From assembly GCA_035084275.1 (NCBI GenBank), contig CM068779.1, forward strand, positions 1,550,001 to 1,614,000: a stretch of DNA of 64,000 nt. Direction: 5' to 3'. The notes beneath the pieces were generated by a model. That model was not told where the DNA came from. It did not search any database and saw nothing but the letters and a program-made list of their open reading frames with translations. This document shows, one piece after another, positions 261 through 47,427 of this stretch (positions within the stretch are counted from its first letter, which is position 1; every line of letters begins with the position of its first letter). Position numbers and translations under genes: made by a program. The stretch is from Hydrolagus colliei. Lineage: Eukaryota.

Positions 261-1600
261 TAATTACAGTTTAAATTGTTATCTAGAGGTAAGTTCTGAA
301 TGATGGTCAGCCAGACCAATAATACAGCCATTAATCTTACTTTTCTCAGTATGTTTAAGCATTCTTTTGTAGGAGGCTAATATTTTGTTCCCTGGGTACT
401 TCGTCAAGCTATTTGTGAATATTCCAATTAATATTCCCAGTTGCACTGAAGATTATAGGAACTATGTTTGTTTTACATTGTCACAAATGTCTGCAATCAA
501 ATTGTAGATTGATATATTTCCTGATTTTCTTTTTTTTTCACGCAATGAGTTGTTCGAATCTGGAATGCATTGCCTGAAAGAGTGGTGGAGGTTGATTGGA
601 TAACTTTAAGAGAGTGGTTATCTGGGGAGGATAAGTTTGCGGGCTTATGCGGAGAGAGCCGGGGAGTGGGATTGACTTTGAATAGCCACATTATTCTACA
701 TACATAATACATAATAACAACAACTTGGATGTATATAGCGCCCTGCACCCCGAAAGGAATCTCAGAGCGCTTCCCAATAACGGAGCCCGGGGCCGAGCCA
801 GTGAGAGGGGGAAGTCAGTGACCAAAAGCTTGATCGATAAGAAAGGTGTTTATCCAAGACCTGAGGTAGGAAGAGAGGGGGCAAGATGAAGGAAGTGAAG
901 AAGGGAGTTCCAGAGCCTCGGGGCGTAGTGGCTGAAGGCATGGCAACCGATGGTAGTGCGGAGGATTCGGGGGACAAGGAGGCGGCCAGATCAGGTGGAG
1001 CGAATGTAATGGGTGCTGTTGTGAGGAGAGAGGAGGTCAGAGATGTAAGTGTAGCAGAGTGGAGGGATTTAAATACAAGTGTGATGCCTCGGTTCCATAC
1101 GGGTTCGGGTAGGTGGAGGAGTTGGGAACCATTTGACTGAAGATGTTGATGAGAACCAAAGAGTATGGCTTCTGTCATATCAACATTTAGCGAAAGGAAA
1201 TTTGCGCTCATCCAGCCCATGATGGCTGACACAACATCAGGGGACTAGGGGGTCGCAAAGTGAGGTGGAAAAATTTAGTTGGGTGTCATCCGCATACACG
1301 TAGAAGTATTCCTGTGTCTGTGGATGACATCCCCAAGAGGGAGCATATAAATTAGGAAGAGGAGAGGGCCAAGGATCCTTGGGGTACCTGACAGGTAACT
1401 GGGTGAGAGCGGAAGGAAAGGCCGTTTGTGTTGGCGGTTTGTGAGGTAGGACTCAAGCCAGACTCAAACCAGGCGAGTGCGGTCCCACTGATAATACTAC
1501 ATTATTATATATAGTTATACGTATTGGCACTAGTGTTTGTGCCTATGCTGCTTAATCCCATACACTCTATTCTGAAAGTAATTTGAAAGCTTTTGAAAGT

Positions 1601-4288
1601 GGCAATTTTAGTTAAGGACTCAGTGACTGCCTTAGAAAGGAACGAGGTGGAAGAAGGACTAAAAACCGAATCTATCTGGTTAGAAATGAGGAATAAAAAA
1701 GGTGCAGTTACACTGTTAGGGGTATACTATAGACCACCAAATAGTGGGGAGGAGATAGACAAGCAGATCTGCAAGCGTATCACGGAGAAATGCAGAACTA
1801 ATAGAGTAGTGATAATGGGTGACTTCAACTATCCCAACATAGACTGGCAGAATAGTAGAGTAAAGGGCAAGGAGGGAGAAGAATTCCTGAAGTGTGTGCA
1901 GGACAACTTTCTTGATCAGTATGTTTCCAGTCCAACGAGGAAAGAAGCATTGCTGGATCTAGTTTTGGGAAATGAGGTAGGGCAAGTTCAACAGGTTTCT
2001 GTAGGTGAGCATCTAGGGAATAGTGACCACAATATCGTTAGATTCAGAATAATTATGGAAAGGGATAAGGAACGATCACAGGTGAGGACACTCAACTGGA
2101 AAAGGGCTAATTTCAATGAGTTGAGGTGGGACCTAGCCAAGGTGGATTGGAAAGAAAAATTGGCAGGTAAGACAACTATCGAGCAGTGGGCAGCGTTCAA
2201 AGAGGAGATAGTTCAGGCACAGGTCAAAAGCATCCCCACAAAGGTGAAATGTAAGGCATCCAAACCTCCCTGGATGACTAAGGAAATTGGGGCCAAAATA
2301 AAACAAAAAAAAGAGGCTTATGATAAGTGTCAGGCTCAAAATTCAGAAGGGAACAAAGCAGAATATAGGAAGTGTAGGATAGAACTAAAAAAGGAAGTTA
2401 GAGGGGCAAAGAGACTGCATGAAAAACAATTAGCGAGTAAGATTAAGGGGAACCCTAAGGTTTTTTACCAACATATTAAGAGTAAAAGGTTGGTCAAGGA
2501 TAGGGTGGGGCCAATTAGGGACCTCGGAGGAAATCTCATTGTGGAGGCAGAGGGCATGGCTGATGTACTGAATGAGTACTTCGCCTCTGTCTTCACAAAA
2601 GAAAATGATACAGCCAATGCCATGGTATTAGAGGAGAGGGTAGGAGAAATGGATAGAATAATTATAACCAGAGAGGAAGTGCTAAAAAGGTTGACGTCGC
2701 TCAAGGTGGATAAGTCACCTGGTCCGGATGGGATGCACCCTAGGTTACTAAGTGAGGCACGGGAGCAAATAGCAGGGACTCTGGCCACGATCTTTCAATC
2801 TTCCTTGGACACAGGGGTCGTGCCAGAGGACTGGAGGATAGCTAATGTTACTCCCTTGTATAAAAAGGGGCAGAAGGACAAGCCTGGTAACTACAGACCA
2901 GTCAGTCTAACGTCGGTAGTTGGCAAACTTCTAGAGTCCATAAATCAGGGACAAGGTAGATCTTCACTTAGAAAGATATAGGCTAATAAAGGACAGTCAA
3001 CATGGATTTGTTAAAGGCAAATCTTGCCTTACAAATCTGATAGAATTTTTTGATGAGGTAACGGAATGGGTGGATAATGGTAGCGCAGTTGATGTAGTTT
3101 ACATGGACTTTCAAAAGGCATTTGACAAAGTGCCACATGAGAGACTTATTATAAAATTAAAGGCCCATGGCATAAAAGGGACAGTGGCAGCGTGGATCCA
3201 CAACTGGCTGCGAGACAGAAAGCAGAGAGTTGTAGTGAGCGGCTGTTTTTCAGATTGGAGGGAAGTGAGCAGTGGTGTGCCACAGGGATCAGTTTTGGGA
3301 CCATTGCTGTTTGTAATCTACATCAATGATCTGGACTTGGGTGTACGGAGTACAGTTTCCAAGTTTGCAGATGACACTAAGTTAGGGAGAATAGTAAACA
3401 GTGAGGAGGATAGTAGCCATCTGCAAGAGGATATAGACAAATTGGTAAAGTGGGCAGACACATGGCAGATGAAGTTTAACGCAGAGAAGTGTGAGGTGAT
3501 GCATTTTGGGAGAAGAAATGAAGGGAGGCAATATAGGCTAGATAGTACAATTTTAAATGGTGTAAAGGAACAGAGAGACCTGGGGATTTGTGTTAGTGAC
3601 TCGTTGAAGGTGGCAGGACAGGTAGACAAGGCTGTTAAGAAGGCATATGGGATACTAGGCTTTATAAATAGGGGTATAGAGTACAAAAGTCAGGAAGTGC
3701 TGACTAACCTCTATAGGACTTTGGTGAGGCCTCAGCTGGAATACTGTGTTCAATTCTGGTCACCACACTACAGAAAGGATGTGAAGGCATTGGAAAGGGT
3801 ACAACGAAGATTTACTAGGATGGTGCCAGGATTGAGGGACTTCAGCTATGAGGAGAGGCTAGATAGGCTAGGGTTATTCTCTCTGGAGCAGAGAAGATTG
3901 AGGGGAGACCTAATAGAGGTTTATAAGATCATGAGGGGTTTCGACAGGGCAAATAGAGAAAAACTATTTCCACTCGTGGGTGAATCTGTGACTCGTGGTC
4001 ACAGATTTAAAATAGTTTCAAGGCGAAGTAGAGGGGAGCTGAGGAGAAATTTTTTCACTCAGCGAGTTGTTGGAATCTGGAATGCATTGCCTGAAAAGGT
4101 GGTGGAGGCTGATTCGATAACAACTTTTAAAAGGGAATTAGATCTTTATTTAGGGAGAACGGGTCTATTAGGCTATGGGGAGCGGGCAGGGCAGTGGGAT
4201 TGAATCGCTCTTTTCAAAGAGCCGGCACAGACTAGATGGGCCGAATGGCCTCCTTTTGTGCCGTAAAATTCTATGATTCTATGATTCT
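1601..4288 (+). mobile_element. 5'-truncated CR1-clade LINE (APE endonuclease + RT), one 1-bp frameshift near 2942
   Basis: ORFs 1593-2981 (GDFNYP, SDH, PGNYRPVSL) and 3070-4203 ([14 protein letters not shown]); (attctatg)n tail; aagt duplication at 1597-1600 and 4289-4292; empty site at 51263-51266. Confidence 0.97.
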
Positions 4289-4754: not shown

Positions 4755-7195
4755 CAACCAACCTCTCATCATTTCTTAAACTGTTTGCCTTCACCAAATC
4801 TTAAAGATGCTTTCCTATAACGAGCAGTAAGTATAGGATCCAAATTATTAGTTCATTGTTGGATTACTTTTTCAGGGGTAAAAATTCATTCCAAAAATAA
4901 TACTAATAATTTGATCACTCCACAGGATGAAACCATTGACAAGCTTCTCTGTCCACACACACACACATACACACACACAAACACCTCTGTCTACCCAGTA
5001 CGTAGTAAGTAGGAACCAGATTGTTGGATTGCTTTTCTGGGGGTAACAATCCATTCAAAAATAACTAATAATAATAATAATTTGGTCATTCAATCCACAG
5101 ATGTTTGTCGGACGTCTCTGTGCACAATCACCCACAAAACACATACACTTTACAGCATGTTCTATAAAGCGCTTTGAGACGTTGTGAAGACATGATAAGG
5201 CCTTTTATTATAATCTATTCTATGATCATTCCCAATTCACATCTGTTGAGATTGATTGTCATACATTAACACCAATAATGATACAGTTCACCCGAGTGTA
5301 AATTAATTTTCTTGACTTTCGTATTCTTGGTGATGATTCATGATTTGAACAAAATGATTGTAACTCAATGAGCCCAACATTAGCCCATGGTCTGGGCTGA
5401 CACACCATTGCAGTGTTGGGGAGTTTCACAATTATCAGAGTTCCTAAATATCTGGATTAAACTACAGACTGCTCTGTCTGTCCAGATGGAATTTAAAGAT
5501 CCCACAGCACTGTTTAGAAAGAGAAGGGAATTTCTCTGGTGTCCCAACCAAGAATCCCCCAAATAAAATTGGTCTCTTGATTCATGCTGTTTGCAGATGT
5601 CACTGTTTTCAAAGTGGCTGGCATATGGCGTATAAATTTCACCCACAAATATACAGTCAATTCACTTTACAATGAAGTGCTTTGAGACATCGATTAGATG
5701 TGAAAAACTCTATATCAAAATACTAGGAGTATTATTTTTAGAAATATACAGCAACCACATTTTACAATAAATCCTATGAAGCATTGTGAAATGTCTCAAT
5801 GACTTGATAAGACATTATATAAAATGCAAGGAGTATTTAGTGCATTATAAGGACAACACAGGCCAAATGGTCTCCTTCTGTGCTGTAATATTCTATGATC
5901 CAGTAATGTTCTTTGAACAGTAGAATAGAATGGACAAATAGGAAACTGCTTTTTAATAATAATGCTTGCATTTGATACAGCAGCTAATGACATTGTTGTG
6001 CCTTCTCAAAGCACACCATGGAGTAAATAGATTGGGTATTTTATAATAATCCGTCAAAAAAAACCCACAATACTATAATAAAAATTGGACATTTCAATCC
6101 ATGACTGTTTGTGGGACACGGCTGTGCGCAATTGGCTAAGGAGTTTCACCACAAATGTACAGTCAATTCACATTACAGTATATTTTGTGAAGCGCTTTAG
6201 ACGTCGATACGTTGTGAAAATGCTATATCAAATACAAGGATTCTTCTTATTTTGTGGGTGAAACACAGCAGCCAATTGCGCACAGCAGTGTCCAACACAC
6301 TTTCAAGGATTGATTTGGAGGCAATCACCAACAAGTGGGTTCCTATTTACTGCTAGGTAAACAGTGGTGTTTATGTGTAATAAGAACATTTACCTAAGGT
6401 ATCCCCTCACCCAGAAATCAAAACCATGTTCTCGAACTTGTCAAATTGCAAATAATGGTACTTATTAAAGATATGTGGCCACATGTGTCAAAAGCACTAA
6501 ATTTCACTACTATAATTAAATGCCTTTGAGAGAGAAACTAGGAAAATAACTCATACTGTACTGTATATCGATATGGCAGAAACATTATTTCTCTACTTTA
6601 AGCAGCTGAATGACATGAAATTGAACCATCAGATCATGAGCAGCTCATCCAGTTGTCTGGATATAAAACATTTTGTTTGAACATGTGAATATGAGTCTTC
6701 TCCCTAAACATGGTGACCAGGTTAGCGACAAATACCCTGGAACATGAATGGCACATAGATAGGTTATTGTTAAACAGAACTGTTACTGTACTTACCCAGC
6801 ACTGTCAGGGTGATTTTCGCTGATGCCTTTTGGTTAGTGGCTAAGGTCATGCTTACTGTGTACTCTCCAGCGTCAGTATAATTCACAGATTTTAGCTGGA
6901 GAGACCTAGTGGGGAGTAACACAGCCCGGTCTTGGTAAATCGGGTTTACACTTCCACCTCCATTTGGAAACCAGTTAAGAACAAGCGCAGTCCCGAAACT
7001 CCAGTCACCATTCGTCACCTCACCAGACGGTTTCACTGTAAGCTCAGCTGTACTCCCGACAAGGGCTGTAATGGGATTGTGTGGGACAGTGATGGTGAAC
7101 TGGGCTGTAACTGGAGGGAGAGAAGATCACATTAAGGACAGCGAGGCATCGGCTGCATACACATCTACACAGTCCGTCCTGACTCTCTCTCTCTA
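4755..7195. repeat. Direct segmental duplication of ~38755-41190
   Basis: Near-identical sequence and matching spurious ORFs (5380-5646 vs 39381-39647). Confidence 0.93.
6796..7110 (-). CDS. CEACAM-like IgV N-domain exon, type N1 (gene presumably continues left of window)
   Basis: ctccag acceptor, gtaag donor, 315 nt phase 1-1; VTAQFTITVPHNPITALVGSTAELTV...WSF...DRAVLLPTRSLQLKSVNYTDAGEYTV...ITLTVL; no canonical V disulfide. Confidence 0.88.
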
Positions 7196-7290
7196 TTGTA
7201 GGGACGTGGTCAGCAACTTCTCCCTGTCTCTATCGTTAAATCATCTTCAATAAACTCCCAACTGAGAACAGGTGAGAAAGTGAGACTCAC

Positions 7291-7342
7291 CCGCACATAC
7301 ACAGCAGCAAAGGGCAACTACCCCGAGCAGTGCTGTCTGCAT
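7291..7342 (-). CDS. Signal-peptide exon MQTALLGVVALCCCVCA
   Basis: ATG, hydrophobic 17 codons, G|gtgagt phase-1 donor, 180-nt intron to N exon. Confidence 0.88.
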
Positions 7343-7849: not shown

Positions 7850-10800
7850 AAAGTGCGTTACACGATGTTTTACTATCAAGTGTAGTGACTGTGTATTTAG
7901 CAGGTGAATGTGGCAGCTGGTTTAGACGCAGTGACATCCCACACACAGCTGTGAAGCGAACGACCAAAACCATGAGGTGAATGGCAGCTCCCTGACTGCC
8001 CAACAAAGGTCTGAATGTCATTGATCAAGACAGAAACCACAGGGTTAGAAACCCAATGTGAGTTGGTGTTTAGCTGTGAGTTCACAATGACAGGATCTCA
8101 ATGATCACATCAAGCTGTGGGTGAGTTACAGTGTAACAGCCCCACCGTCTGGCAGAGCAGCGCTATTACACAATGACAATTAGCTGCTTCAAGAGGGAAG
8201 GTTGAGCTGGGCACAAGATCACAAGGTTAGTTTGGAGACAGAAAGGCCTTTTGGTGTCTGATCTCATCCCTTCAGATATGAAGCAGGCGGAGCAGAGGGA
8301 GTGGATAGTAATGGGTTAGGAGGTTACAGAGGGTAGGGGGGAGCAAGGCCATGGAGGGCTTTCAAGGTAAACTGCAGCTCTTCCCACACTGTGATTCTTC
8401 ACTGCTGATTGCTAGTCAATACTGCAACATCTATTGGACGTTTAAATGATGTGAAAGAAGGTTTTTTTTATTATCTCAAAGCATAAGACTCACAGCAACA
8501 AGAATGACATTCGCTAACAATGTTGTATTTTATGGATCACATTTGCATCAATAACCAATGATCTGGAATATACAAAGCATAACATACTATAGATAAAGCT
8601 ACAAGATGATAGAAGGTTCAATGAGATTATACTGTATTTAGCATTATAATGTAATTTATTGCCAACGATTAGGAGGTATCAAATGAATTATGTAAGGGGC
8701 AACAGCGTCAACCTGTCTCAGTTGGTTGCACTCTCAGCTCTGAGTCACAAGGTTGTTCGTTCATCACTGCACATCAGGAAATGCTTCAAAAATTCCTTCA
8801 ATCAAACCAATAATACTGTAATTTGGTCACTTTAATCCACGACTGTTTGTGGGACACTGCTACACACAATTGGCTGCCGCGCTTCACCCACAAAATATAT
8901 TGTCAATTCACTTTATTCTGTGGACTCCTTTGAGAAGTCTTGAAGATATGATAAGGCACTACTGTATATCAAATGCAAGGACTGTTATTACTGTAACACA
9001 CATAGTCTAGGTTGACATTCTAGTGCAGTGCTGGGGTGTGCTGCTTTGTTGGAGGTGCTGTCCTTCAGATGAGCATTTGTGTTCTGTGTGTGTGATCGAA
9101 AGGTACTGTAAAGTTAATGTATATTGGTCTCTTTCCCTGAGATGTGCTGTAGGCGTTTGCTTGCAGAAGCAGTAATTAATTAAGCTGCTGGTTAATGCTG
9201 TTCAAGGAGCTATACACTGCCTTCGAATGACTGTTGAACCTTTTGATATCATTCGCCCTTTACTCAACAGACAATATGCAAATAAACTATGATAAGGTTT
9301 GGATTTTCCATTAAGTTCATGAAAGTGCAATGTGAAATGCTTCCTCAGTGACAGAGATCGAGCAATCTAAATCTCTGCTCAAAGGTTAGTATCAAACTAG
9401 AGTTTTTCTTCTTTTAAATCATGATTAACAACAACAAAATGACATTTGTAAAGCGCCTTTTACGCCAGGAGGATGTCCCCAGGCGCTGAATGGATCATCT
9501 GGATGTAATCGTAGATGCAGGGTTGGAATGAGGGAGGGCAGAAGGGCTGAAGGCTCGGTCAAACAGGAGGGTCTTGGGTCATGCCTTGAAGGAGGCCATA
9601 GAGGGAGCAAAGCCAAGGAATTGTGGGATGGAGTTACAAAGAGTAGGGGCATGGAAGCTGAAAGCCTATCTGCTGGTGATAGGGCAGGTCGGGTGGGACA
9701 CATGGAGCAGGCTGAACGGAGGCTGTTGAGAGGAGGGATTTGGGAGGTTGGCAGATTATTGCAGGTTAGCAGGTCAGAGAGTTGGGATGGGGTAAGGCCG
9801 TGGAGGGTCTTGAAAGTGAGGATGAGGATTTTGGAATTCTATCCTCTGAGAGATAGGGAGCCAGTTAAAATGTATAGATTCATACAAAAATATAAAATGT
9901 ACATATTCAAATGTATCTTGGGACAGTCTTCAGCATCAAGGCGGGATGGGCAAAGTGCTTAACACACGTCCTTTGTTTTTCCTCATGTAGTTTAAGTCCA
10001 TTCAGAGAAACTATTTCCTCTGGTGGGGAATTCAGATCAAAGGGGAGCATCATCTTATAATGAGAGCCAGGCCAATTTAAGAGTTGAAATCAAGAGCAAT
10101 TTTTCATCCAAATCACAGTGGGAATCTGGAACTTTCCATTGCCCCCAATTGGCTGTGGATTATGGCCGTGGATCCCTTCACATTGTCCAGACTGAGGTGG
10201 ATAGGTGTTTGTGAGGTCAGGGTGGCAAGGAATATGGGGCAAAGGTGAGATCATTGGAGTTGAGGTACTGATCAGCCTTAAAGAATGGCGGAACAAACTC
10301 GAGGGGCTGAATGGCCTCTTTCAGTTCTAGATCCTCACTCTTGTGTTCAAATCCATCCACTCCTCTGCACCCTGTAACCTACAGTCTACCCGCTGCCTCC
10401 ATTCTGCTGGGTCCAGCTTCCTCCTTGTCCAATCCATCATCCATCATCAGCAGCCGTGCTTTCAGCCATGACACCCTGAAACTCAGAAACTCCTTCCCTC
10501 AATCTCTTCGCCTTACCCCCTCCTTTTCCACCTTCAGGTCGCGCTTGAAGACCATTTTCTTCGACCGCAGTTACGGTCACCTTCCTCCCTCCCCTTGTTC
10601 AGCCTCGTGCTCTGCCATTGTGAAGTGCTCTGAGTCGCAGTCTAGTGTGGAGGGTGCTATATAAATGCAAGTTGTTGTTGTTGTTCGTACGTTCTTGTGT
10701 TCCTCCGATGAATATTTATTTACGTATAACAGCTAGACGATTTACAAAAACAGTTAATTCTTCAGCAAAAATCAGCATTTACAATGATTTCCATCTACAT

Positions 10801-11530
10801 AGCAGGAGAGCGATAGTTACGTAACTGTTAGTTATTGGACAGTTATTACACTAAAGAGAAACATACACAGCACTGGAGAAGGAACATTGAACAATATTAA
10901 ATAACTCAATGCCATTAGCCAGGTGACTATGTGTTTGTTCAGGGGGACATTAAAGATCCAAAGGAATGACTTGACAACAAGAGAATGTTAGGGTTAGGGT
11001 ATTCTAGAGTTATTCTCCCAGTTCTCTAGCCATTAATTCCCCCAATTAAAATAAAAAGGGGCTTTGTTTCCTGGCTGTGTGTGGGACATTGCCGCTGCAA
11101 TTGGGCTGCTGTGTTTACCGACAAATACACAGTCACAGTGAACTCCTGGGGTTCAGTTCTGGGGGGCGTCCTCCCCATGTGGCTACCAAACCAAGGATTA
11201 TATTATTATTATTATTTACCTGGATCAGGTACTTGTGGTAATTCCTGTTGGAAAGTGAAGAAAGATGATATTGTTATGTGTCGTTGCTTTATTGTACATC
11301 ACTGCAGACAATTGAAAGCCGTTAAATCTGCACTGACAACCCCTCCTAAAGCTAAAGTTCTAATCCTAATGTGTGATCTTCCCCCATACCCTTCACATGT
11401 ATCAGCTTCCAACACTTGTCCAGTTCACTTCCATGCACAGTTGTGGTCCTAAACATTGCTTGCTGCTCCCTACCTCTGCCACCCTCTGACCCCATATCAA
11501 CCTCTTCCACCTCTCAGCTGCTGTGGCCAG
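7850..11530. repeat. Inverted duplication of ~56620-59000 (with internal indels)
   Basis: 7850-8260 is the reverse complement of 58590-59000; 8700-8790 of 57340-57430; 11225-11530 of 56620-56925. Confidence 0.9.
11220..11244 (-). CDS. Cytoplasmic micro-exon C5 (ELPQVPDP) of the ITAM-bearing gene
   Basis: cttcactttccaacag acceptor paralogous to that of 14545-14587; ag|gtaaat donor; phase 0-1. Confidence 0.55.
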
Positions 11531-12294: not shown

Positions 12295-12350
12295 GTTGTC
12301 CGTTCGTCTTTGCATCTCAATGCCGGGCTGATGTGGTCTGTGAACAACAT
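12295..12350 (-). CDS. Cytoplasmic exon C4 (DVVHRPHQPGIEMQRRTDN)
   Basis: ctattcttacag acceptor, gtaagt donor, 56 nt phase 1-0, matches phase of C3. Confidence 0.65.
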
Positions 12351-14544: not shown

Positions 14545-14587
14545 CTATCAAGCTGCTGTAGTCTGGTGAAGATGGTTGTCGTAATTC
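14545..14587 (-). CDS. Cytoplasmic exon C3 (ELRQPSSPDYSSLI), second part of ITAM
   Basis: tctcttcactttaacag acceptor, ag|gtatgt donor, phase 0-1. Confidence 0.8.
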
Positions 14588-15502
14588 CTGTTAAAGTGAA
14601 GAGAGAACTTGTTTAGTTGCCTTTTCTTTCTAAAAACATAGACAATTAGGCACATCAGGCTTTTGCTAGTAATCACACCCCTACTAACCCCAACACTGAA
14701 ACCACTTCACCTAATTCTATTACTTCCCAATACATCCCAATACCAATTTCATGCTGCTTGCTTCATTTGTGTCTGTGGAAAAATGTGTGGTACAGACATG
14801 GAATCCTGTAGCTCAGTGATTAGAGCGCTCGCCTTACAAGCGAGAGGACCTGGTTTTGGTCAAAGCAGGACCAAACATTGGGCAAGTTTCCTTACTCCAC
14901 ACGCCTCTGTTTACCCAGCAGTAACCTGGTACAGTAAAAGCTTGTTTCTCCGGCATCCTCGGGACCTGCCCAGTGCTGGTTAATTAAATATGCCGGACAT
15001 TCGAGCGGCAAGTTGCTGAGAATCCTACACAAAAAATTAACTCATTTTAAAACATACCATATTAATAATAGACTGAACTAATAACAGGATATTGTATGGG
15101 TACTTACCAATAAAGCATTCTAGCACACTCGGTAAAATGATCGGTAAAATAAAAACTCCAGCTTTCGTTAAGTTTAATAATTGCGCATGCGTACGCATTG
15201 CACGCATGCGCAAAGTGAGCATACCGCGAGTGTCCCGGATGGCTCCGGTATGAGATACGTTTGCTGGAATGGTGAATTGCATTGGGAGGTACCGGTTGGG
15301 GTTGAGTTGGTTGGGTGACTCTATATTTTGTGGGTGAAACGTAACAGCCATTTGTGCACAGCTGTGTCCCACAGATAGTCATGGCCTGTGTGACCCAATG
15401 TGTATTCATAATAATTTTCAAATTAGCCCTTCACTTTCTGGCTGTAGGTGGGACATTGCTTATTTATTATTATGTCCCAATGAATGAATTAAACCGTCTC
15501 AC

Positions 15503-15535
15503 CTCATATTGATTTTCGTCGCCATTATTCTGTAA
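15503..15535 (-). CDS. Cytoplasmic exon C2 (LQNNGDENQYE), first part of ITAM
   Basis: catgtag acceptor (in-frame alternative 6 nt downstream), gag|gtgaga donor, phase 0-0. Confidence 0.78.
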
Positions 15536-16363
15536 CTACATGAGATATAAAGAAATGTTAAGTTTTTAGAACATAATTATTTTAAGGCAGTTGATTATCC
15601 AGTGAATAGTTTGAGTCAGTTAGTGAGCTTCGGTAGAGCTGTTCACATCATGCCAGAAAGAGTGAGATGGAATCATACAACAACTTGCTCTTATATAGCG
15701 CCCTCCACGCTGAGTAGTGTCCCAGAACACTTAACTGGAGTACAGCCTGACCCCGAGCAGGGGGAAGGCGCGGAGGATATGGGGAGCACCACCACGGTTG
15801 AAGAGGAAGGTTTTCAGCCAGGACTTCAAATGTGGGAGAGAGGGAGCAAGGCGGATTGAGGGGGAGAGTGTTCAAGAGTCTTGGGGCGTAATGGTGGGAA
15901 GCATGACCTCCGCTGGTGAGGTGGAGGGTGAAGGATTAGCGGACGAGCAGGAGCTGGTGCCAGTCGAGTAGCACCAGGTATGGGATTGGGGAGTGAGAAG
16001 CTCGGAGAGATCGATAGGTGCTGTTCGGTGATGAGGAGCCAGTGGAGTCAGAATTGGTGAGATGTGGGAACACAATTTAGTCTGGGTTAGTAGTTGGGCG
16101 GCAAAGTTCTGAATGAGCTGGATCTTGTGGAGCTGGGGAGACTGGTGAGGAGTGTGTTTAGAGAGATATGCATAAGGCTTTTGGCTGCATTTGGGCTAAG
16201 GTACAATGGGGCGGAGGTGGAAGAAGATGGTCCTGGTCAGAGACCGAATGTGTGGGAGGAAGGACAACTTCTGGGGACAGCTTCTGGGGTCAAACCAGAT
16301 GCCTAGATTGCCCATATCTTCTTAATCATGGTACCAACACATTGTTTTGGCAACTATCCTGAC

Positions 16364-16419
16364 CTTTGCTGAGGCATTCTGGTAGATATTGAGTCCATCA
16401 TTGGGTGTTGAAGAGATTC
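16364..16419 (-). CDS. Cytoplasmic exon C1 (GISSTPNDGLNIYQNASAK)
   Basis: cattctctcagcag NAGNAG acceptor, aag|gtcagg donor, 56 nt phase 1-0. Confidence 0.72.
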
Positions 16420-18548: not shown

Positions 18549-18680
18549 CGGGATCTCTTGCAGAATACCAACACTTTGCGTAGACGCCAACAGCAATGAG
18601 GAGAATGAGGGTCACAAACAATATAACACCTAGACTGATTGCTGCAATGGTCCCTGTCTGATCCTGAGGTGAAGTAAATT
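18549..18680 (-). CDS. Transmembrane exon (EFTSPQDQTGTIAAISLGVILFVTLILLIAVGVYAKCWYSARDP)
   Basis: tttttcctctccag acceptor, g|gtaact donor, 132 nt phase 1-1, ~23-aa hydrophobic span. Confidence 0.9.
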
Positions 18681-19942: not shown

Positions 19943-20218
19943 AGACAACCTCGATGTTGAATGTGGATGTCTCATTGCTGACAGGGTTTTGAACCAAACA
20001 GCGGTAATCCCCAGAGTCCTTTCTGTTCACCAGCGTTATGGTCAAGGTATCATTGTTGGGAGATACGAGAATCCGCCCGTTGCTCTCGAGAGCTTGGTTA
20101 TCTTTGTACCACACTCGGGAGTAAATGAGGCCAGAGGCGTCACAAGTCAGGGACACACTCTCAGTACCTTCCATTGGGTTTGAAGAGTTGCCCAGAACTC
20201 TGATATTGGAGATTTGTT
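19943..20218 (-). CDS. CEACAM-type IgC2 A domain exon (A2)
   Basis: EQISNIRVLGNSSNPMEGTESVSLTC...W.KDN...NDTLTI..VNRKDSGDYRCLVQNPVS; 276 nt phase 1-1. Confidence 0.92.
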
Positions 20219-20757: not shown

Positions 20758-21021
20758 CTATAACTTGGATTTCACTGGTCGCCTCATTATACATTAGTGT
20801 TATATTGTTATATGCCTGACAAGTGTAATTTCCAGCGTTGATCATAGAAATATTACTGATGGTAATTTGTGAATAGGGTTGTTGAAGAGAGGAACTATTG
20901 AAAAACCACTGAAATTCAGAGACTGGATTGGAGACAGTGGAACACTTCAAATCAAAGCTTGCTCCCAAACCGTGAACTGTTCGATCTGGGACGATGGATA
21001 GAATGGGTATTTCTGGTCCAT
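20758..21021 (-). CDS. CEACAM-type IgC2 B domain exon (B1)
   Basis: YGPEIPILS...LKCSTVSNPVSEFQWFFN...NAGNYTCQAYN; 264 nt phase 1-1. Confidence 0.92.
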
Positions 21022-22495: not shown

Positions 22496-22774
22496 AGTTC
22501 ACATTCAGAACAAATGGACTGCTTGTGCTGTCACTAACAGCGTTGAAGACATGGCAAGTGTACATCCCACTGTCAGACCTCAAAACTCCAACTAGGGTTA
22601 GTGTTTTGTTATCCAGACTTAAACTAATCCTGTCGTCGTAGATTATCGTTTTATTATCCTTAAACCACTCGTATACAGCATCCATTTGCAGTGCAGTGCA
22701 GGTCAGCAACACAGTGTCATTGTATTCAACCGGGGCAGGTTTACTGGAGACAATGGTAATGTTGGAAACAGTTT
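22496..22774 (-). CDS. CEACAM-type IgC2 A domain exon (A1)
   Basis: ETVSNITIVSSKPAPVEYNDTVLLTC...YEWFKDN...DNKTLTLVGVLRSDSGMYTCHVFNAVS...LNVN; 279 nt phase 1-1. Confidence 0.93.
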
Positions 22775-23781
22775 CTGTTAAAACACAGGAAAGTATTTGG
22801 ATTATGTATATTAAACAGCAGTTTGAAACTCAAGTCATCTGACGATACTTCTTATTTCACCCCATAATCCTGTCGATTCACTTTACAGTGTATTCCGTGA
22901 AGTGCTTTGAGACATTTGAGACGCGATAAAGGTACGATATCAAATGCGTAAATGTTATGTTACGTTTCTGGAAAGAAAACATATCTATTGCTTATGTGGC
23001 CCCCCACCCCCTTCCTCAATTGTGTAGCTCAGCGGATGGAGTCCTGTAGCTCTGTGGTTAGAGCACTCACCTCGCAAACAAGAGGACTCAGCGAAATGCT
23101 CTGACGCACTCCAGAATCGCTTGCGAATGCTCTAACTGCTGAGCTGTAGGACTCGATAGTAGAGCTGAACTGGGGCGAGAAGGTTAACGTGAAGGCAGCC
23201 ACAGGTGAAGTGGAAAGTCTTAAGGTGATGTGAAGGCGTAATGAGGCAAGGTGAAGCAGGCAGTGCCAGAGGTTCAGGGAGAGTGTGGGTGGAGGCATGA
23301 CCACCAATTGTAGAGAGGTGAGGTTGAGAGACGTTAAATAACTGAAGACTGGACGGAGGCAGCCAAGCGAAATGGGAAGGTAGAGGATTTGGGTGTAACC
23401 AGGTAATAAGGAAGTCAAATGAGATTATAATTAGCTAAGTCCTCGTCAGCCAGGATCCTTTCACGATTTTAAACTTAAATTTAAAACGTCCCGTTTGTTG
23501 GCCTTCTCAACACCTCCCTCCATAGGCTGCAGATCATCCAGATCTCTGCAGAACCATGTTCTCTCCCACACTAAGCACCGTGATCCCATCTCCCCCATTT
23601 TCACCTGACTCCATTGGCTCCCCATCACCCAGAGGATTCAATTCAAGATCCAGGTCCTCACCTTCAAAGCCCTCCATGGACTTGTCCTGCAAACTCCCAA
23701 CTACCGACCAACCTGACCGGGCTTTTAGCCTCTCTGCCCCACACTCTGGAACTCCATTCCACAGTTCCTATGCCTCGCTTC

Positions 23782-24018
23782 CAGCCAATTGCACCGACCT
23801 CAGTTGGAGGGTGGCGTCAGGTAATAATAATTTAATCCGCGGCGCATACTCAGCACTTGGTGTGACGACTGTCCGAACCCAAGTGACAATTTTTTTCCCA
23901 CTAAAACTCCACCTGCCTTCAGCTGCCACACCAGAGAGTCTGACTATGAAGTCGGCCGTGCCTCCAACAGGAACATTAATGGTATCCTGTGGTAGAGTGA
24001 CGGTGATTCCCGATGTAA
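23782..24018 (-). pseudogene. Truncated divergent IgV N exon (F/G strands and donor replaced by an L2 fragment)
   Basis: VTSGITVTLPQDTINVPVGGTADF...LQLRSVQLA then L2 sequence and TAG at 23768-23770; 23-nt branch/pyrimidine segment deleted before acceptor. Confidence 0.8.
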
Positions 24019-24159: not shown

Positions 24160-24211
24160 CCGCACATACACAGCAACAAAGGGCAACTACCCCGAGCAGT
24201 GCTGTCTGCAT
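24160..24211 (-). CDS. Signal-peptide exon of the ITAM-bearing gene
   Basis: MQTALLGVVALCCCVCA, intact gtgagt donor. Confidence 0.8.
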
Positions 24212-25998: not shown

Positions 25999-26050
25999 AT
26001 GCAGACAGCACTACTCGGGGTAGTTGCCCTTTGCTGCTGTGTATGTGCGG
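25999..26050 (+). CDS. Signal-peptide exon, plus-strand gene
   Basis: MQTALLGVVALCCCVCA G|gtgagt. Confidence 0.88.
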
Positions 26051-26243
26051 GTGAGTCTCAGTTTCTCACTAGCTCTCAGTTGGGAGTTTATTGAAGATGA
26101 TTTAACGATAGAGACAGTGAGAAGTTGCTGACCAGTCCCTACAATAGAGAGAGAGAGAGAGAGGGCGTCAGTCAGGACGGACTGTGTAGATGTGTATTCA
26201 GTCGATGCCTCGCTGTCGTTAATATGATCTTCTCTCTCTCCAG

Positions 26244-26555
26244 TTACAGCCCAGTTCACCATCACTGTCCCACATGGTACCATTACAGTCCCTGTCGGGG
26301 GTACAGCTGAGCTTACAGTCAAAGCGTCTGGTGAGGTGGGGAGTGGTGAATGGTATTTCGGCAATGTGCTTGTTTGTCGTTGGCTTCTGTCATCAATAAG
26401 TATCTCCCCTTCTTACCAAGACCGGGCTGTGTTACTCCCCACCTGGTCTATCCAGCTAAAAGCTGTGAATTATACTGACTCTGGGGTTTACACTGTGACC
26501 ATGCTCTCACACACTGGCACCAAGGCCACAGCGACAGTCACCCTGAAAATGAAGG
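26244..26555 (+). CDS. CEACAM-like IgV N exon, type N2
   Basis: 312 nt phase 1-1; VTAQFTITVPHGT...EWYFGNVLVCRW...DSGVYTVTM...VTLKMK. Confidence 0.88.
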
Positions 26556-38282: not shown

Positions 38283-40779
38283 CTGTTTAGCAAGGAAAGG
38301 ATTTGATGTAAACGTGGATGTAGGGAGAACAGTTACCAGCCTGTTCTGCTTTAGTTTAACTGAAACTCAAGTCAACAGAATTTTACTTTCAACAAGAAAT
38401 TGGTGTGGAGTAAGGAAACTTGCCCAAGGTTTCGCCCAGATCTGCCCGGATTCGAACATTGCTCTCACGCTTGTAAGGCGAGTTCTCTAACCACTGAGCT
38501 ACAGGAAGGAGCAGCTCAATGGAATTCAACAACAACAACAACAAAATTACATTGAAAGAGCGTCGGGAGGACGTCCCAAGGCGCTGAACAGTTATGTTGG
38601 GACCTGAGTGGGGAGGAAGGGTCGGGGTAGGGGCAGGGGGGACGGTGAGTGGGAAAGGGGGGAGAGTTAGGAGGGCAGTAGAAGGTGCGGTCGAAGAGGA
38701 AGGTCTTGAGACCAGCTCACAGTGTGGGAGCAGAGAGGCTGCAACAGGTATTTGGTAACCAACCTCTCATCATTTCTTAAACTGTTTGCCTTCACCAAAT
38801 CTTAAAGATGCTTTCCTGTAACTAGCAGTAAGTATAGGATCCAAATTATTAGTTCATTGTTGGATTACTTTTCCAGGTGTAAAAATTCATTCCAAAAATA
38901 ATAATAATAATTTGATCACTCCACAGGACAAGCTTCTCTGTCCACACACACACACATACACACACACAAACACCTCTGTCTACCCAGTACGTAGTAAGTA
39001 GGAACCAGATTGTTGGATTGCTTTTCTGGGGGTAACAATCCATTCAAAAATAACTAATAATAATAATAATTTGGTCATTCAATCCACAGATGTTTGTCGG
39101 ACGTCTCTGTGCACAATCACCCACAAAACACATACACTTTACAGCATGTTCTATAAAGCGCTTTGAGACGTTGTGAAGACATGATAAGGCCTTTTATTAT
39201 AATCTATTCTATGATCATTCCCAATTCACATCTGTTGAGATTGATTGTCATACATTATAGCCATAGATTATAGAAAAATTAAACACACCAATAATGATAC
39301 AGTTCACCCGAGTGTAAATTAATATTCTTGGTGATGATTCATGATTTGAACAAAATGATTGTAACTCAATGAGCCCAACATTAGCCCATGGTCTGGGCTG
39401 ACACACCATTGCAGTGTTGGGGAGTTGCACAATTATCAGAGTTCCTAAATATCTGGATTAAACTACAGACTGCTCTGTCTGTCCAGATGGAATTTAAAAA
39501 TCCCACAGCACTGTTTAGAAAGAGAAGGGAATTTCTCTGGTGTCCCAACCAAGAATCCCCCAAATAAAATTGGTCTCTTGATTCATGCTGTTTGCAGATG
39601 TCACTGTTTTCAAAGTGGCTGGCATATGGCATATAAATTTCACCCACAAATATACAGTCAATTCACTTTACAATGAAGCGCTTTGAGACATCGATTAGAT
39701 GTGAAAAACTCTATATCAAAATACTAGGAGTATTTTTTTTAGAAATATACAGCAACCACACTTTACAATAAATCCTATGAAGCATTGTGAAATGTCTCAA
39801 TGACTTGATAAGACATATAAAATGCAAGGATTATTTAGTGTATCATAAGGACAACACAGGCCAAATGGTCTCCTTCTGTGCTGTAATATTCTATGATCCA
39901 GTAATGTTCTTTGAACAGTAAATAGAATGGACAAATAGGAAACTGTGCTTTTTAATAATAATGCTTGCATTTGATACAGCACCTAATGACATTGTTGTGA
40001 CTTCTCAAAGCACACCATGGAGTAAATAGCTTGGGTATTTTATAATAATCCGTCCAAAAAAACACACAATACTGTAATAAAAATTGGACATTTCAATCCA
40101 TGACTGTTTGTGGGACACTGCTGTGTGCAATTGGCTAACGGGTTTCACCACAAATGTACAGTCAATTCACGTTACAGTATATTTTGTGAAGCGCTTTAGA
40201 TGTCGATACGTTGTGAAAATGCTATATCAAATACAAGGATTATTCTTCTTATTTTGTGGGTGAAACACAGCAGCCAATTGCGCACAGCAGTGTCCAACAA
40301 ACTTTCAAGGATTGATTTGGAGGCAATCACCAACAAGTGGGTTCCTATTTACTGCTAGGTAAACAGTGGTGTTTATGTGTAATAAGAACATTTACCTAAG
40401 GTATCCCCTCACCCAGAAATCAAAACCATGTTCTCGAACTTGTCAAATCGCAAATAATGGTACTTATTAAAGATATGTGGCCACATGTGCCAAAAGCACT
40501 AGATTTCACTACTATAATTAAATGCCTTTGAGAGAGAAACTAGGAAAATAACTCATACTGTACTGTATATCGATATGGCAGAAACATTATTTCTCTACTT
40601 TAAGCAGCTGAATGACATGAAATTGAACCATCAGATCATGAGCAGCTCATCCAGTTGTCTGGATATAAAACATTTTGTTTGAACATGAGTCTGCTCCCTA
40701 AACATGGTGACCAGGTCAGTGACAAACATGAATGGCACATAGATAGGTTATTGTTAAATAGAACTGTTACTGTACTTAC

Positions 40780-41094
40780 CCAGCACTGTCGGGGTGATTT
40801 TCGCTGATGCCTTTTGGTTAGTGGCTGAGGTCATGCTTACTGTGTACTCTCCAGCGTCATTATAATTCACAGATGTTAGCTGGAGAGACCAAGTGGGGAG
40901 TAACACAGCCCGGTCTTGGTAAATCGGGTTTACACTTCCACCTCCAGCTGGAAACGAGTCAACAACAATCACAGTCCCGAAACTCCGGTCACCACTCCTC
41001 ACCTCACCAGACGGTTTCACTGTAAGCTCACCTTTACCTCCGACAGGGGCTTTAATGGGATTGTGTGGGACAGTGATGGTGAACTGGGCTGTAA
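40780..41094 (-). pseudogene. Decayed N1 exon lacking its leader
   Basis: Acceptor AG>AA (41095-96), W>R, W>S and L>P changes, leader region deleted at ~41190. Confidence 0.8.
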
Positions 41095-41523
41095 TTGGAG
41101 AGAGAGAAGATCACATTAACGACAGCGAGGCATCGGCTGCATACACATCTACACAGTCCGTCCTGACTGATGCCCTCCTCTCTCTCTCTATCAGCAACCC
41201 ACTGTTTGTGGGGGACGCTGCCGCAGTCGGCTGCCGCGTTCCGCCCACAAACGTACAGTCTTTTCACTCTACAGTATATTCTGTGAAGCGCTTTTGAGAC
41301 GTCTGGAAGGCGTGAAAAGCTCTTCATCAAATGCGAGGATTATCATTGCTATAATTAACTGAGAGCTCGTGAGATAGACAGACTCACCCACACAGACACA
41401 GCGCAATATCAAATGAAAGGAGCATTATTATTATTTTGTGTGACGATGTTAATTTAAATCTTCTACCTAAACTTGGTGACCAGCTTAGTGTTAAATGGAA
41501 CAGTTACTTACCATTCACTTTCA

Positions 41524-42756
41524 ACAACAACAACAACAAATTACACTTATAGAGCGCCTTTCACGTCTGGAGGACGTCCCAAGGCGCTGCACAGGAGGCG
41601 TGTGACCCGAGCTGGGAGGGGAGTGTTTGGGAAGGGGTGAAACACGAAGGGGAGGTCGAAAAATTCGGGGTGGAACAAAAGGCACGGTCAAAGAGGAAAG
41701 TCTTCAAACCGGCCTTGAAAGAGGAAAGGGAAGAAACGAGACGGAGGGATTGAGGGATGGAATTCCATAGGGTCGGAGCAGAGAAACTGAAGGCCCAGCC
41801 TCCGATGGTGGGGCGGTTCGTGCGGGGGGCTTGGAGCAGGCCAAGTCCTGTTGAACGGAGGGTCCGGGTGGGCTTGTAGGGGAAGAGTAAATTGGTTAAA
41901 TAGGGCGGGGCAAGGCCATGTAAAGCCTTGAAGGTGAGGACGAGGATCTTGAACTCGATCCTCTGGAGGATGGGGAGCCAGTGGAGACGGGCGAGGGTGG
42001 GGGTTATATGGTCGCGGAGGCGGGTGCGGGATAATACATGGGCTGCAGAGTTTTGGATGTTCTCCAGCCTGTGAATGGAGGAACTGGGGAGGCCGACGAG
42101 GAGAGAGTTTCCGTAGTCCAGCCGTGAGGTGATGTACGCGTGCACGAGTGTTTCAGCAGCGCGGGGGGTAAGATAATTGCGGAGCCTGGCAATGTTGCGC
42201 AGGTGGAAGTAAACGGTGCCGGTCAAGGCGCGGATGTGGGGGAGGAAGGAGAGTTTATGGTCGAACGTGATGCCGAGGTTCCTGACTGGCTTTGTGAGGT
42301 GGAGAGTGCAGCCTTGGATGTTGAGGCTGGCAGCGCCCGATGTGCGGAGGCGCTGGCTTGAGCCAATCAGGAGGGCCTCGGTCTTGCTCACGTTCAATTG
42401 GAGGAAGTTGTCCCTCGTCCAGGACTCGATGTCGGACAGACATGCTGTCAGAACATCGTTGGTCTGGGGGTTGAGGGATGAGGCAGAAAGGTACAACTGG
42501 ATGTCGTCCGCATACATGTGGAAATATACCCCATGTTTGCGTATGACATCGCCCAGAGGGAGCGTGTAAATGGTGAAAAGGAGGGGGCCGAGGACAGAGC
42601 CCAGAGGGACGCCGTGAGAGACTATGCGGGGGTTAGAGGAGAAACTGTTGGAAGAAACAAAATGTAGGCAGTGGGTCAGGTAGGAATGGAACCAGTCAAG
42701 GACTGTGCCTTGAAGGTGGGAGGAAAGTCGTTGGAGGAGGATGGTGTGATCGACTG
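41524..42756 (-). mobile_element. 5'-truncated L2 LINE inserted 12 nt inside an N2 exon end (remnant 41512-41523)
   Basis: ORF 41561-42517 with YADD; (ttg)n tail abuts ttacttac|cattcactttca, homologous to 54851-54870. Confidence 0.93.
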
Positions 42757-43526
42757 GTGTGATCTAGATACAGCCCATCACCAGCAATACAAATCCCTAT
42801 AAGCCTGAACACCATAACTGTGCAAACAAAAGGAGACAGATATTACAATAAAACTTGTCTGTTGTAATGTGAAATAATAGTTTGTCTAATGTATAAAATC
42901 AATTCTGTCCCTTGAAATTCCACTTGGGTCTCAAATGACGCTATTATTTAGCATTTCAGAGCAAGCAGAAATTTGCCCAATTTCTGTAGTTCAGTAGACA
43001 CTATTTAAGAATTTAATTCTATATGCTGTGAAATGATAATACAATAGATACGTCTAGAACCAAGGGGGAATATCTCCCCCTACATTTTAACTGATTCCCA
43101 ATTTAGTGGAGCTTTAATCACTGTTCATCATTTCAATGTTTTCAATTATTAATGTATTTATTTCAGGAATGGACAAGTGCTTTCATTCTTTGGGTATAAT
43201 TGAAAGTTTGCAGTGATGCAAACAGAATTAAAATCTAATAGTTTAATGCTGGTTTAGATTGAAATTCATAATGAAATGAGTTAATGAAAATGTCAATTTC
43301 TGAGTTTAAGCTGGATGTTCTTTTACCTTCTCATTGTTTTTATAATTACAAACCTTTTGTTGCATATCATCAAATTCAGTGTTTGTTGAAGGGTTCGATT
43401 ATTTGGTGTCCACAATGGATAACTAGGGTATAATACTTGCAGAAGCAAATATTGCTTAACATTAACCACGATTATAAAAATAACTCACAGAAATATAACG
43501 TTGAAGCTGCTTGCTGTGACACTTAC

Positions 43527-43837
43527 AGTTGATATCGAGAACATATGGAAGGCTGGTGCTGTTACTAACAGCGTTGTAGGCATAGCATGTGTAATTCCCA
43601 CTGTCAGACCTCAAAACTCCAGCTAGAGTCAGGCTGTTGTTATCCACAATTAAAACAATCCTGTTGTAAAGGCGCTCTATAAATGTAAATTGTTGTTGTC
43701 ATAGCTGATTGGTTTATTGTCTTTCAACCATTGATATGAAACGTCTGTCCCTGATGCATTGCACGTCAGCCCCACAGTGTCATTATATTCTACTGGCTGG
43801 GTGACATTGGGGGTGACAACAATATTGGAAACAGAAT
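43527..43837 (-). pseudogene. IgC2 A-domain exon disrupted by a 26-bp L2-tail insertion
   Basis: DSVSNIVVTPNVTQPVEYNDTVGLTC...SYDN[insert]RIVLIVDNNSLTLAGVLRSDSGNYTC; paralog of 22496-22774. Confidence 0.88.
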
Positions 43838-46210: not shown

Positions 46211-47427
46211 TTTAATTACAGTTTAAATTGTTATCTAGAGGTAAGTTCTGAATGATGGTCAGCCAGACCAATAATACAGCCATTAATCTTACTTTTCTCA
46301 GTATGTTTAAGCATTCTTTTGCAGGAGGCTTATATTTTGTTCCCTGGGTACTTCGTCAAGCTATTTGTGAATATTCCAATGAATATTCCCAGTTGCACTG
46401 AAGATTATAGGAATTATGTTTGTTTTACATTGTCACAAATGTCTGCAATCAAATTGTAGATTGATATATTTCCTGATTTTCTTTTTTTTTCACGCAATGA
46501 GTTGTTCGAATCTGGAATGCACTGCCTGAAAGAGTGGTGGAGGTTGATTGGATAACTTTAAGAGAGTGGTTATCTGGGGAGGATAAGTTTGCGGGCTTAT
46601 GCGGAGAGAGCCGGGGAGTGGGATTGACTTTGAATAGCCACATTATTCTACATACATAATACATAATAACAACAACTTGGATGTATATAGCGCCCTGCAC
46701 CCCGAAAGGCATCTCAGAGCGCTTCCCAATAACGGAGCCCGGGGCCGAGCCAGTGAGAGGGGGAAGTCAGTGACCAAAAGCTTCATCGATAAGAAAGGTG
46801 TTTAGCCAAGACCTGAGGTAGGAAGAGAGGGGGCAAGATGAAGGAAGTGAAGAAGGGAGTTCCAGAGCCTCGGGGCGTAGTGGCTGAAGGCATGGCAACC
46901 GATGGTAGTGCGGAGGATTCGGGGGACAAGGAGGCAGCCAGATCCGGTGAAGTGAAGGCAATGGGTGCTGTTGTGAGGAGAACGGAGGTCAGAGATGTAA
47001 GTGTAGAAGAGTGGAGGGATTTAAATACAAGTGTGATGCCTCGGTTCCATACGGGTTCGGGTAGGTGGAGGAGTTGGGAACCATTTGACTGAAGATGTTG
47101 ATGAGAGCCAAAGAGTATGGCTTCTGTCATATCAACATTTAGCTAAAGGAAATTTGTGCTCATCCAGCCCATGATGGCTGACACAACATCAGGGGACTAG
47201 GGGGTCGCAAAGTGAGGTGGAAAAATTGAGTTGGGTGTCATCCGCATACACGTAGAAGTGTTCCCGTGTCTTTGGATGACATCCCCAAGAGGGAGCATAT
47301 AAATTAGGAAGAGGAGAAGGCCAAGAATGGATCTTTGGGGTACCTGACAGGTAACTGGGTGAGAGCGGGAGGAAAGGCCGTTTGTGGAGATGTACTGTTG
47401 GCGGTTTGTGAGGTAGGACTCAAACCA

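Follow-up and report, generated by a model that had tools for sequence, protein, structure and literature searches.

Does a cartilaginous fish encode, in cytoplasmic exons so short that they escape open reading frame (ORF)-based views, a receptor of the CEACAM family with its own activation motif of the immunoreceptor tyrosine-based type (ITAM)? The question is raised by a stretch of the genome of the chimaera Hydrolagus colliei (GenBank assembly GCA_035084275.1, contig CM068779.1, positions 1,550,001 to 1,614,000), the 64-kb window analysed here, in which an earlier note had pointed to an ITAM divided among micro-exons. The interval concerned probably represents cytoplasmic exons 1–3 of a minus-strand CEACAM-family gene with 13 exons, extending from 24211 to 10716; "probably" refers here to the full explanation, which comprises the gene, an inherited ITAM tail, the inferred signalling and a truncated N exon. 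The three exons themselves, termed C1–C3, are very probably genuine ITAM-encoding CEACAM exons.

The ITAM tail encoded by C1–C3

The three exons are the following.

16364 to 16419, minus strand: cytoplasmic exon C1, GISSTPNDGLNIYQNASAK, phase 1 to 0, containing YQN (a YxN motif)
15503 to 15529, minus strand: cytoplasmic micro-exon C2, NNGDENQYE, whose last two residues open the ITAM's first YxxL
14545 to 14587, minus strand: cytoplasmic exon C3, ELRQPSSPDYSSLI, which finishes YEEL and has YSSL 7 residues later

The micro-exons splice into E-x-x-YEEL-x7-YSSL as the earlier note had described: the peptides are found on the minus strand where they had been placed, with consensus splice sites and matching phases. 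With exon borders marked by a slash, C1 reads ttctctcag(cag)/GAATCT...GCAAAG/gtcagg and extends from 16419 (or 16422) to 16364 in phase 1 to 0; the tandem CAGCAG acceptor makes the start at 16422 possible, with one additional Ala. C2 (tgtagttacag/AATAAT...TATGAG/gtgaga, 15529–15503, 27 nt) is phase 0 to 0, and C3 (cactttaacag/GAATTA...TGATAG/gtatgt, 14587–14545, 43 nt) is phase 0 to 1. The transmembrane (TM) exon, 18680–18549, closes in phase 1, and the frame is thus continuous into C1–C2–C3. The spliced product of the four exons is ...YSARDP(A)GISSTPNDGLNIYQNASAK/NNGDENQYE/ELRQPSSPDYSSLI, where C1 joins C2 as ...NIYQNASAK/NNGDENQYE.

The canonical ITAM consensus, (D/E)-x-x-Y-x-x-(L/I)-x6-8-Y-x-x-(L/I), is matched in full by E-N-Q-Y-E-E-L-RQPSSPD-Y-S-S-L-I, which begins 33 residues past the TM helix. 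A phase-0 intron splits the first YxxL between YE and EL (TAT GAG/gtgaga ... aacag/GAA TTA). This split, which had been proposed earlier, is seen in the DNA, and the same border is present in a second chimaera, Callorhinchus milii. The extra YQN site is also present, in C1, 14 residues upstream of the ITAM. One detail of the earlier peptide needs correction, in that its residues LQ are the TTACAG of the C2 acceptor and are intronic, with ttacag/ also found in C. milii; the motif is unaffected. Neither of the two tyrosines fits the consensus of the inhibition motif of the immunoreceptor tyrosine-based type (ITIM), as there is no I/V/L/S at position −2 (N-Q-Y, P-D-Y). When the 84-residue tail was shuffled 200,000 times, Yxx[LI]-x6-8-Yxx[LI] appeared at a rate of 0.39%, and the form with D/E at −3 at 0.06%.

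On the minus strand, the sequence immediately following C3 (14248–14635) shares ~80% identity with C. milii. Were the C3 donor read through, translation would stop 7 residues past the ITAM (...YSSLIGMLEKC-stop). Such an end resembles the terminal ITAM exon of skate and sturgeon genes, and the gene may once have ended here. Neither an inverted-repeat scan of the C1–C3 interval nor a tRNA scan of 10–25 kb found anything.

Structure of the gene

The gene consists of a leader, an IgV N exon, four IgC2 exons in the order A1-B1-A2-B2, a TM exon and six small cytoplasmic exons. The exons other than C1–C3, together with a repeat at the N exon, are listed below; Ka/Ks is the ratio of nonsynonymous to synonymous substitution rates.

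24160 to 24211, minus strand: leader exon, MQTALLGVVALCCCVCA; donor gtgagt; ends in phase 1; 90% nucleotide identity to the C. milii leader
23786 to 24018, minus strand: truncated IgV-like N exon, 78 codons ending ...LQLRSVQL; F-G strands (27 codons) and donor missing
23484 to 23782, no strand assigned: interspersed repeat of ~300 bp, adjoining the N exon break
22496 to 22774, minus strand: IgC2-like exon A1, phase 1 to 1
20758 to 21021, minus strand: IgC2-like exon B1, starting YGPE
19943 to 20218, minus strand: IgC2-like exon A2, 81.5% amino acid identity to the C. milii model P0004
19016 to 19273, minus strand: IgC2-like exon B2, Ka/Ks 0.24 against C. milii
18549 to 18680, minus strand: TM exon, ...TIAAISLGVILFVTLILLIAVGVY-AKCWYSARDP; helix without a charged residue; ends in phase 1
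12295 to 12350, minus strand: cytoplasmic exon C4, DVVHRPHQPGIEMQRRTDN; 56 nt; phase 1 to 0
11220 to 11244, minus strand: cytoplasmic exon C5, ELPQVPDP; 25 nt; in-frame 39-nt deletion relative to C. milii
10716 to 10732, minus strand: last coding exon C6, AVIRK and the stop codon TAA

The leader, A1, B1, A2, B2 and TM exons are all joined in phase 1, and the 12 exons other than N are all open, with AG/GT sites. The gene extends beyond the interval of the earlier note, as C4, C5 and C6 lie outside it. These three exons were found by homology beyond the good phase-1 donor of C3, and they keep frame and splice sites; the full tail after the ITAM reads ...YSSLI/DVVHRPHQPGIEMQRRTDN/ELPQVPDP/AVIRK-stop.

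The gene is placed in the CEACAM family because its best matches are CEACAM models, it has four Ig domains and its A/B exons are in phase 1, which agrees with the receptor class named earlier. The four Ig domains are those recognized by Pfam. A protein database search gave 223 matches, and nearly all the named ones are CEACAM1/2/5/6 or CEACAM-like fish or chondrichthyan models. A few are hypothetical, unnamed or Ig-like domain proteins, with the top ones chondrichthyan. The closest matches are two C. milii entries at 72–81% identity. The B exons begin YGPE/YGPD, like those of other CEACAMs. There is no Cys at the B and F strands in the intact paralogous N exons of the window or in the C. milii N exon (...AELTVKPSG..., ...GEYTVSMT...). 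The canonical intradomain disulfide is thus wanting in intact N exons; the N exon of the gene under study stops before the F strand. No non-CEACAM marker gene was found in the window, just repeats and CEACAM exons; in Xenopus, the CEACAM synteny markers are LIPE/BCL3 (PMC5112662).

A collinear locus in Callorhinchus milii

The comparison locus in C. milii (L001; GCA_018977255.1, WEZY01001515.1) contains P0004, a RefSeq model named 'CEACAM6', and an adjoining 259-aa model. Window positions 24463 down to 6501 correspond to L001 positions 4804 up to 25702 with 72–85% nucleotide identity. The collinearity encompasses the leader, every exon and intron, and intergenic DNA, and continues into the next gene, over ~18–20 kb. 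Sequence comparison suggests that the two loci are either orthologous between holocephalans or related by an old segmental duplication. With C. milii as closest homologue and its locus collinear, the sequence is recognizable as chondrichthyan, as the earlier note had thought probable, and more narrowly as chimaera-like.

Exon number, borders and phases are the same in both loci, the Ig exons are 72–82% identical in amino acids, and the YQN exon is common to both. When P0004 is mapped onto L001, the borders of TM and C1–C6 are exactly those of the window, and L001 keeps the C2 acceptor ttacag/ as well as the donors gtcagg, gtgaga and gtatgt. The 80-nt intron flanks of C1–C3 are 82–91% identical between the loci, compared with 70–86% for the exons. 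Because the flanks are conserved as much as the exons or more, C1–C3 appear to be real, regulated micro-exons. The C. milii locus differs in that its N exon is intact, its C1, C2 and C5 are longer, and the NCBI annotation splits it into two models.

The two NCBI genes, of 259 aa and 319 aa, occupy L001 5337–17722. When the exons of this region are joined at the conserved borders they form a single uninterrupted protein of 616 aa, in the order L-N-A1-B1-A2-B2-TM-tail, and the two-gene split may therefore be an annotation artefact. Many short interspersed repeat copies are present in the window CEACAM introns, and they largely explain why the locus differs in size from that of C. milii.

Is the ITAM cassette inherited?

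CEACAM models from white shark (Carcharodon P0022), cloudy catshark (Scyliorhinus torazame P0024), skate (Rhinoraja P0075) and sterlet (Acipenser P0050/P0079) end in YENx followed by (D/E)xxYxxL-x7-YxxL. Exons of two of these were mapped to their genomes. Those of Rhinoraja read ...AAYENIQDIQQ/ (phase 0), GRRTNAPIGDPTYM/ (phase 0) and ELKIEDRSVYDELKR-stop, and the split is within the first YxxL, ...DPTYM/ELKIEDRSVYDELKR. Those of the sterlet read ...MYENPTAIRRA/, GEAKNPDSTYT/ and GLQFPDQSTYSTLNR, with the split again within the first YxxL, ...DSTYT/GLQFPDQSTYSTLNR. The layout is thus alike in chimaera, skate and sterlet: the YxN exon closes in phase 0, the micro-exon after it stops at Y-x, and the following exon opens with x-L and has the second YxxL 7 residues on. 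The arrangement is not new, as a phase-0 split with a companion YxNx is already described as characteristic of ITAM-bearing CEACAMs in dog, other mammals and Xenopus (PMC2110893, PMC2832619, PMC5112662). As the same layout is found in the skate and sturgeon genes and in the published tetrapod ITAM-bearing CEACAMs, the cassette is, from these sequence comparisons, most likely inherited and not a chance motif.

The elasmobranch and sturgeon models differ from the window gene in that the ITAM exon is terminal and tail similarity to the window is low overall; MAFFT places the elasmobranch tails on C4–C6, not on C1–C3. Sequence alignment alone does not establish homology, and homology of the cassette is therefore argued from exon phases and motif positions. 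A test for tandem duplication of C1–C3 and C4–C6 in C. milii showed no intron-level similarity, and its peptide scores were too low to decide the matter.

It may tentatively be proposed that the YxN motif and phase-0-split ITAM form a cassette ancestral to all jawed-vertebrate CEACAMs, that an activating/endocytic, self-signalling CEACAM was present at the gnathostome base, and that the chimaera tail was extended by a second, now degenerate, YxN-containing module (C4–C6). A contrasting view, expressed in passages of one report, is that the CEACAM family began from an inhibitory CEACAM1-like gene alone (PMC13278318).

Proposed signalling

If expressed, the receptor would span the membrane as a type I protein whose ectodomain has four IgC2 domains, joined in an intact allele by an IgV domain. 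Clustering of the ectodomain would lead Src-family kinases to phosphorylate YEEL and YSSL, YEEL being an optimal context both for Src-family SH2 domains and as a substrate. Once phosphorylated on both tyrosines, the ITAM would dock the tandem SH2 domains of Syk/ZAP-70, and pYQN could recruit Grb2. The expected outcome is activation of the cell or uptake of a bound particle. Human CEACAM3 has been established to act in this way, and the same is assumed of other CEACAMs that bear an ITAM. Because the TM helix has no charged residue, the receptor is expected to signal by itself, without DAP12 or FcR-gamma. The sequence, splice signals, phases, homology and truncation are seen in the data; splicing in vivo, phosphorylation, Syk and Grb2 recruitment and the cell type are inferred.

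Does the window copy encode a working receptor?

Several observations weigh against the reading of the locus as a working activating receptor with an inherited ITAM tail. The first is the N exon, in which the final 27 codons (F-G strands) are missing along with the donor when it is compared with the C. milii N exon and the five paralogous N exons of the window. Past the ~300-bp repeat at the break, the window resumes ~1.6 kb deeper in C. milii intron 2. The N remnant has no Pfam match, whereas an intact paralogous N exon matches V-set, and its identity to the other five window N exons and to the C. milii N exon is only 35–49%. The ligand-binding domain that defines CEACAM function is lost in this assembly. 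Leader-to-A1 splicing stays in frame, and an N-less product is therefore possible. The locus would appear to be either a recently disabled copy or able to make only an N-less protein; any inactivation would be recent because the other 12 exons are all intact.

The C. milii tail is a second such point. It reads PYE/RIGPQSSEDSNLT and has DSNL where the window has YSSL, with GAC (Asp) in place of TAC (the second Tyr) and a one-codon indel, and it therefore has no ITAM. Third, Ka/Ks for the tail is ~2.1 between the window and C. milii copies (10 synonymous and 67 nonsynonymous differences), so that no purifying selection is detectable on the tail between these two loci. The high value may reflect decay of the C. 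milii tail after loss of the tyrosine, diversifying selection, or decay in the window copy. For other parts of the gene, Ka/Ks is 0.24 for B2, 0.60 for A2, 0.70 for TM, 1.05 for B1 and 1.2 for the N remnant. Fourth, a protein search with TM plus tail gave no match at E≤10, and one with B2, TM and tail returned only C. milii P0004, with no annotated orthologue or transcript-derived protein found.

Two further points concern the ancestry of the cassette. Both elasmobranch tyrosines also match the ITIM consensus (S-x-Y-x-x-L). For this reason the ancestral cassette need not have been purely activating, and the ancestral module may have been dual-purpose. In addition, the strict orthologue of the elasmobranch YENI exon may be either C1 or C4; the C. 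milii C4 peptide (VAAPKVYKNINNVQRAKNK) is slightly closer to the YENI exon than is C1.

The foremost alternative is that the window copy is a young pseudogene, in which the gene was put out of action when its N exon lost the 3′ third and the donor, leaving the ITAM as an intact-looking but unused relic. The chances of this fall somewhat short of even. The missing 27 codons and donor, with a repeat at the break and no in-phase cryptic donor seen in the N remnant, are what such a history would leave, and N, B1 and the tail have Ka/Ks values close to 1 or higher. Scattered through the window there are also orphan leader-plus-N units, along with an IgC exon that carries a frameshift, a picture typical of CEACAM clusters in decay, and the database searches with the tail and with B2, TM and tail gave no matching protein or transcript-derived protein. 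Yet 12 other exons keep open frames and consensus splice sites, B2 and A2 have Ka/Ks values of 0.24 and 0.60, and the leader splices in frame to A1. A high Ka/Ks is moreover normal in CEACAM N domains (PMC2110893), and the N truncation could be allelic or an assembly fault. The earlier prediction of an activating, possibly phagocytic, receptor thus holds for the canonical ITAM, but because the N exon is truncated, a working receptor is not to be assumed for this copy; that the copy makes one is possible and rather doubtful.

Alternatively, the main product may be a short-tail isoform without the ITAM, generated by skipping of C1 (56 or 59 nt). Skipping was computed to shift the frame and to give ...ARDPE-stop, and there is a precedent in CEACAM1-S, where the 53-bp Cyt1 exon is excluded (CEACAM1 L/S; PMC13278318). 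The unusually conserved intron flanks of the micro-exons would also suit regulated skipping. But C1 is included in the C. milii model, and a predominantly short-tail product seems unlikely.

It is more improbable that the tyrosines are not those of an activating ITAM but of an endocytic YxxΦ signal or an inhibitory or dual module (inhibitory ITAM, ITAMi, or ITIM-like), a reading that the CEACAM1-like names given to the elasmobranch homologues would suggest. The shark, skate and sturgeon counterparts are S-x-Y-x-x-L and fit the ITIM consensus, and many such motifs are classed as 'endocytic or ITAM-like' by CEACAM workers (PMC5112662). In the window, on the other hand, no I/V/L/S precedes the tyrosines at −2, and the motif agrees with the ITAM consensus throughout, including the E at −3 and the x7 spacing.

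Finally, micro-exons of 27–59 nt are easily invented within 4 kb, but origin of the ITAM as a chance product of convenient AG/GT pairs in an intron-rich region is rejected as hardly credible, being already largely refuted by borders that coincide with those of the independent C. milii gene model and of the skate and sterlet genes, and by the shuffle probability of 0.06–0.39%.

Comparison with known receptors

The comparison set consists of the tetrapod ITAM-bearing, CEACAM1-related receptors (dog CEACAM23–25/28/30; Xenopus Ceacam351/368 and others; reptile CEACAM1L), which were found by scanning ~2 kb downstream of TM exons (PMC2110893, PMC2832619, PMC5112662, PMC13278318). They resemble the window gene in having an IgV N domain with A/B IgC2 domains, an uncharged TM, a tail of multiple micro-exons, the phase-0-split first YxxL and YxNx. 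The window gene differs in its holocephalan lineage and truncated N exon, and in having six cytoplasmic exons, three of them after the ITAM, compared with three in reptiles and four in mammals.

Human CEACAM3, a primate paralogue of CEACAM1, is likewise a single-chain receptor with its own ITAM-type tail motif. That motif, YEEL-x7-YCRM, has the same first tetrapeptide and spacing as the window motif. In CEACAM3 a lone N domain sits immediately next to the TM without any IgC, and the second motif is ITAM-like (YxxM), whereas the window gene has four IgC2 exons between N and TM and a canonical second YxxL. The window gene is not a CEACAM3 orthologue. The description "CEACAM3-like" in the earlier note is apt for the signalling cassette but not for the ectodomain, which is CEACAM1-like, with N plus four IgC2 domains. 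CEACAM1 itself, which has long and short isoforms, shares this ectodomain architecture and the truncation of the tail when the small first cytoplasmic exon is skipped; it differs in carrying an ITIM and a switch motif of the immunoreceptor tyrosine-based type (ITSM), neither of which is in the window tail. Phagocytic decoy receptors of the CEACAM3 type are further marked by expression in granulocytes, by taking up bound microbes without opsonins, and by an N domain much like that of a paired, ITIM-bearing receptor. No ITIM/ITSM-type tail exons or further TM exons were found across the window; such an ITIM-bearing partner could lie outside it.

CEACAMs of cartilaginous fish were reported earlier as skate expressed sequence tags (PMC3628338, PMC4079198), and part of one of these reports claims that an architecture containing an ITAM extends 'from cartilaginous fish to humans' (PMC3628338). 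The receptor class, intron split and YxN companion are already known, and tails of this kind are present in public models from shark, skate and sturgeon. In the literature available for the analysis, no description was found of an ITAM-bearing CEACAM in a holocephalan, nor of the conserved exon-phase layout across fishes.

Other features of the window

Five more IgV N exons are found in the window.

6797 to 7342, minus strand: IgV N exon
25999 to 26545, plus strand: IgV N exon
40781 to 41095, minus strand: IgV N exon
52394 to 52952, minus strand: IgV N exon
54862 to 55405, minus strand: IgV N exon

Their amino acid identities are 58–84% relative to the 52-kb copy. Four of the five come with a leader exon that matches the leader of the ITAM gene exactly or almost exactly, and none has IgC, TM or tail exons of its own in the window. 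The leader-plus-N unit at 25999 (plus strand) is head-to-head with the ITAM gene. The unit at 7342 (minus strand) matches the start of the next C. milii gene, and its remaining exons therefore probably lie beyond the window start. The other units look like orphan leader-plus-N units, either pseudogenes or N-only genes. Between orphan N units, at 43528–43850 on the minus strand, there is a decayed A-type IgC2 exon, split between two frames and interrupted by a stop.

A perfect 30-bp tandem repeat (CAGCCTGTGTCCTGGTCTCTGGTCACTGAG) is found at 52961–53089 (4.3 copies) and 55414–55512 (3.3 copies), with a 100% match. The repeats are directly upstream of two leader start codons, and the ITAM gene appears to have approximately one copy there, read by eye. 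The repeat may represent a variable 5′ untranslated region or a promoter minisatellite.

Near-identical ORF translations recur at 500–1244 and 46452–47142, at 5383–5661 and 39384–39662, and at 6773–7126, 40757–41110 and 52370–52720, which points to segmental duplications of several kb within the cluster. Long ORFs resembling the reverse transcriptase/endonuclease of long interspersed nuclear elements, with motifs identified by eye, are at 1587–4200 (plus strand) and at 41564–42763, 47465–48610 and 49268–50536 (minus strand). Microsatellites and low-complexity stretches (runs of GA/CT and TG/CA) abound at 59800–64000, where the sequence is also broken by four N gaps. A possible Ig-like exon fragment, judged by eye (...SRLTL...), is at 63689–64000 on the minus strand and runs off the window end.

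Significance

The practical importance of the locus is modest, as the receptor class, intron split and YxN motif are already documented elsewhere. For annotation, it illustrates that CEACAM tails made of 25–59-nt exons need homology-guided splicing to be recognized. The truncated N exon in the window and the lost tyrosine in the C. milii copy exemplify the rapid turnover of the family. The locus also provides a concrete sequence with which to probe Syk/Grb2 coupling in a basal vertebrate. If expressed, the gene would represent a CEACAM with an ITAM on its single chain in holocephalans, the living jawed vertebrates that branched off earliest, and the exon-phase architecture common to chimaera, skate, sturgeon and tetrapods supports a very old activating arm of the CEACAM paired-receptor system.

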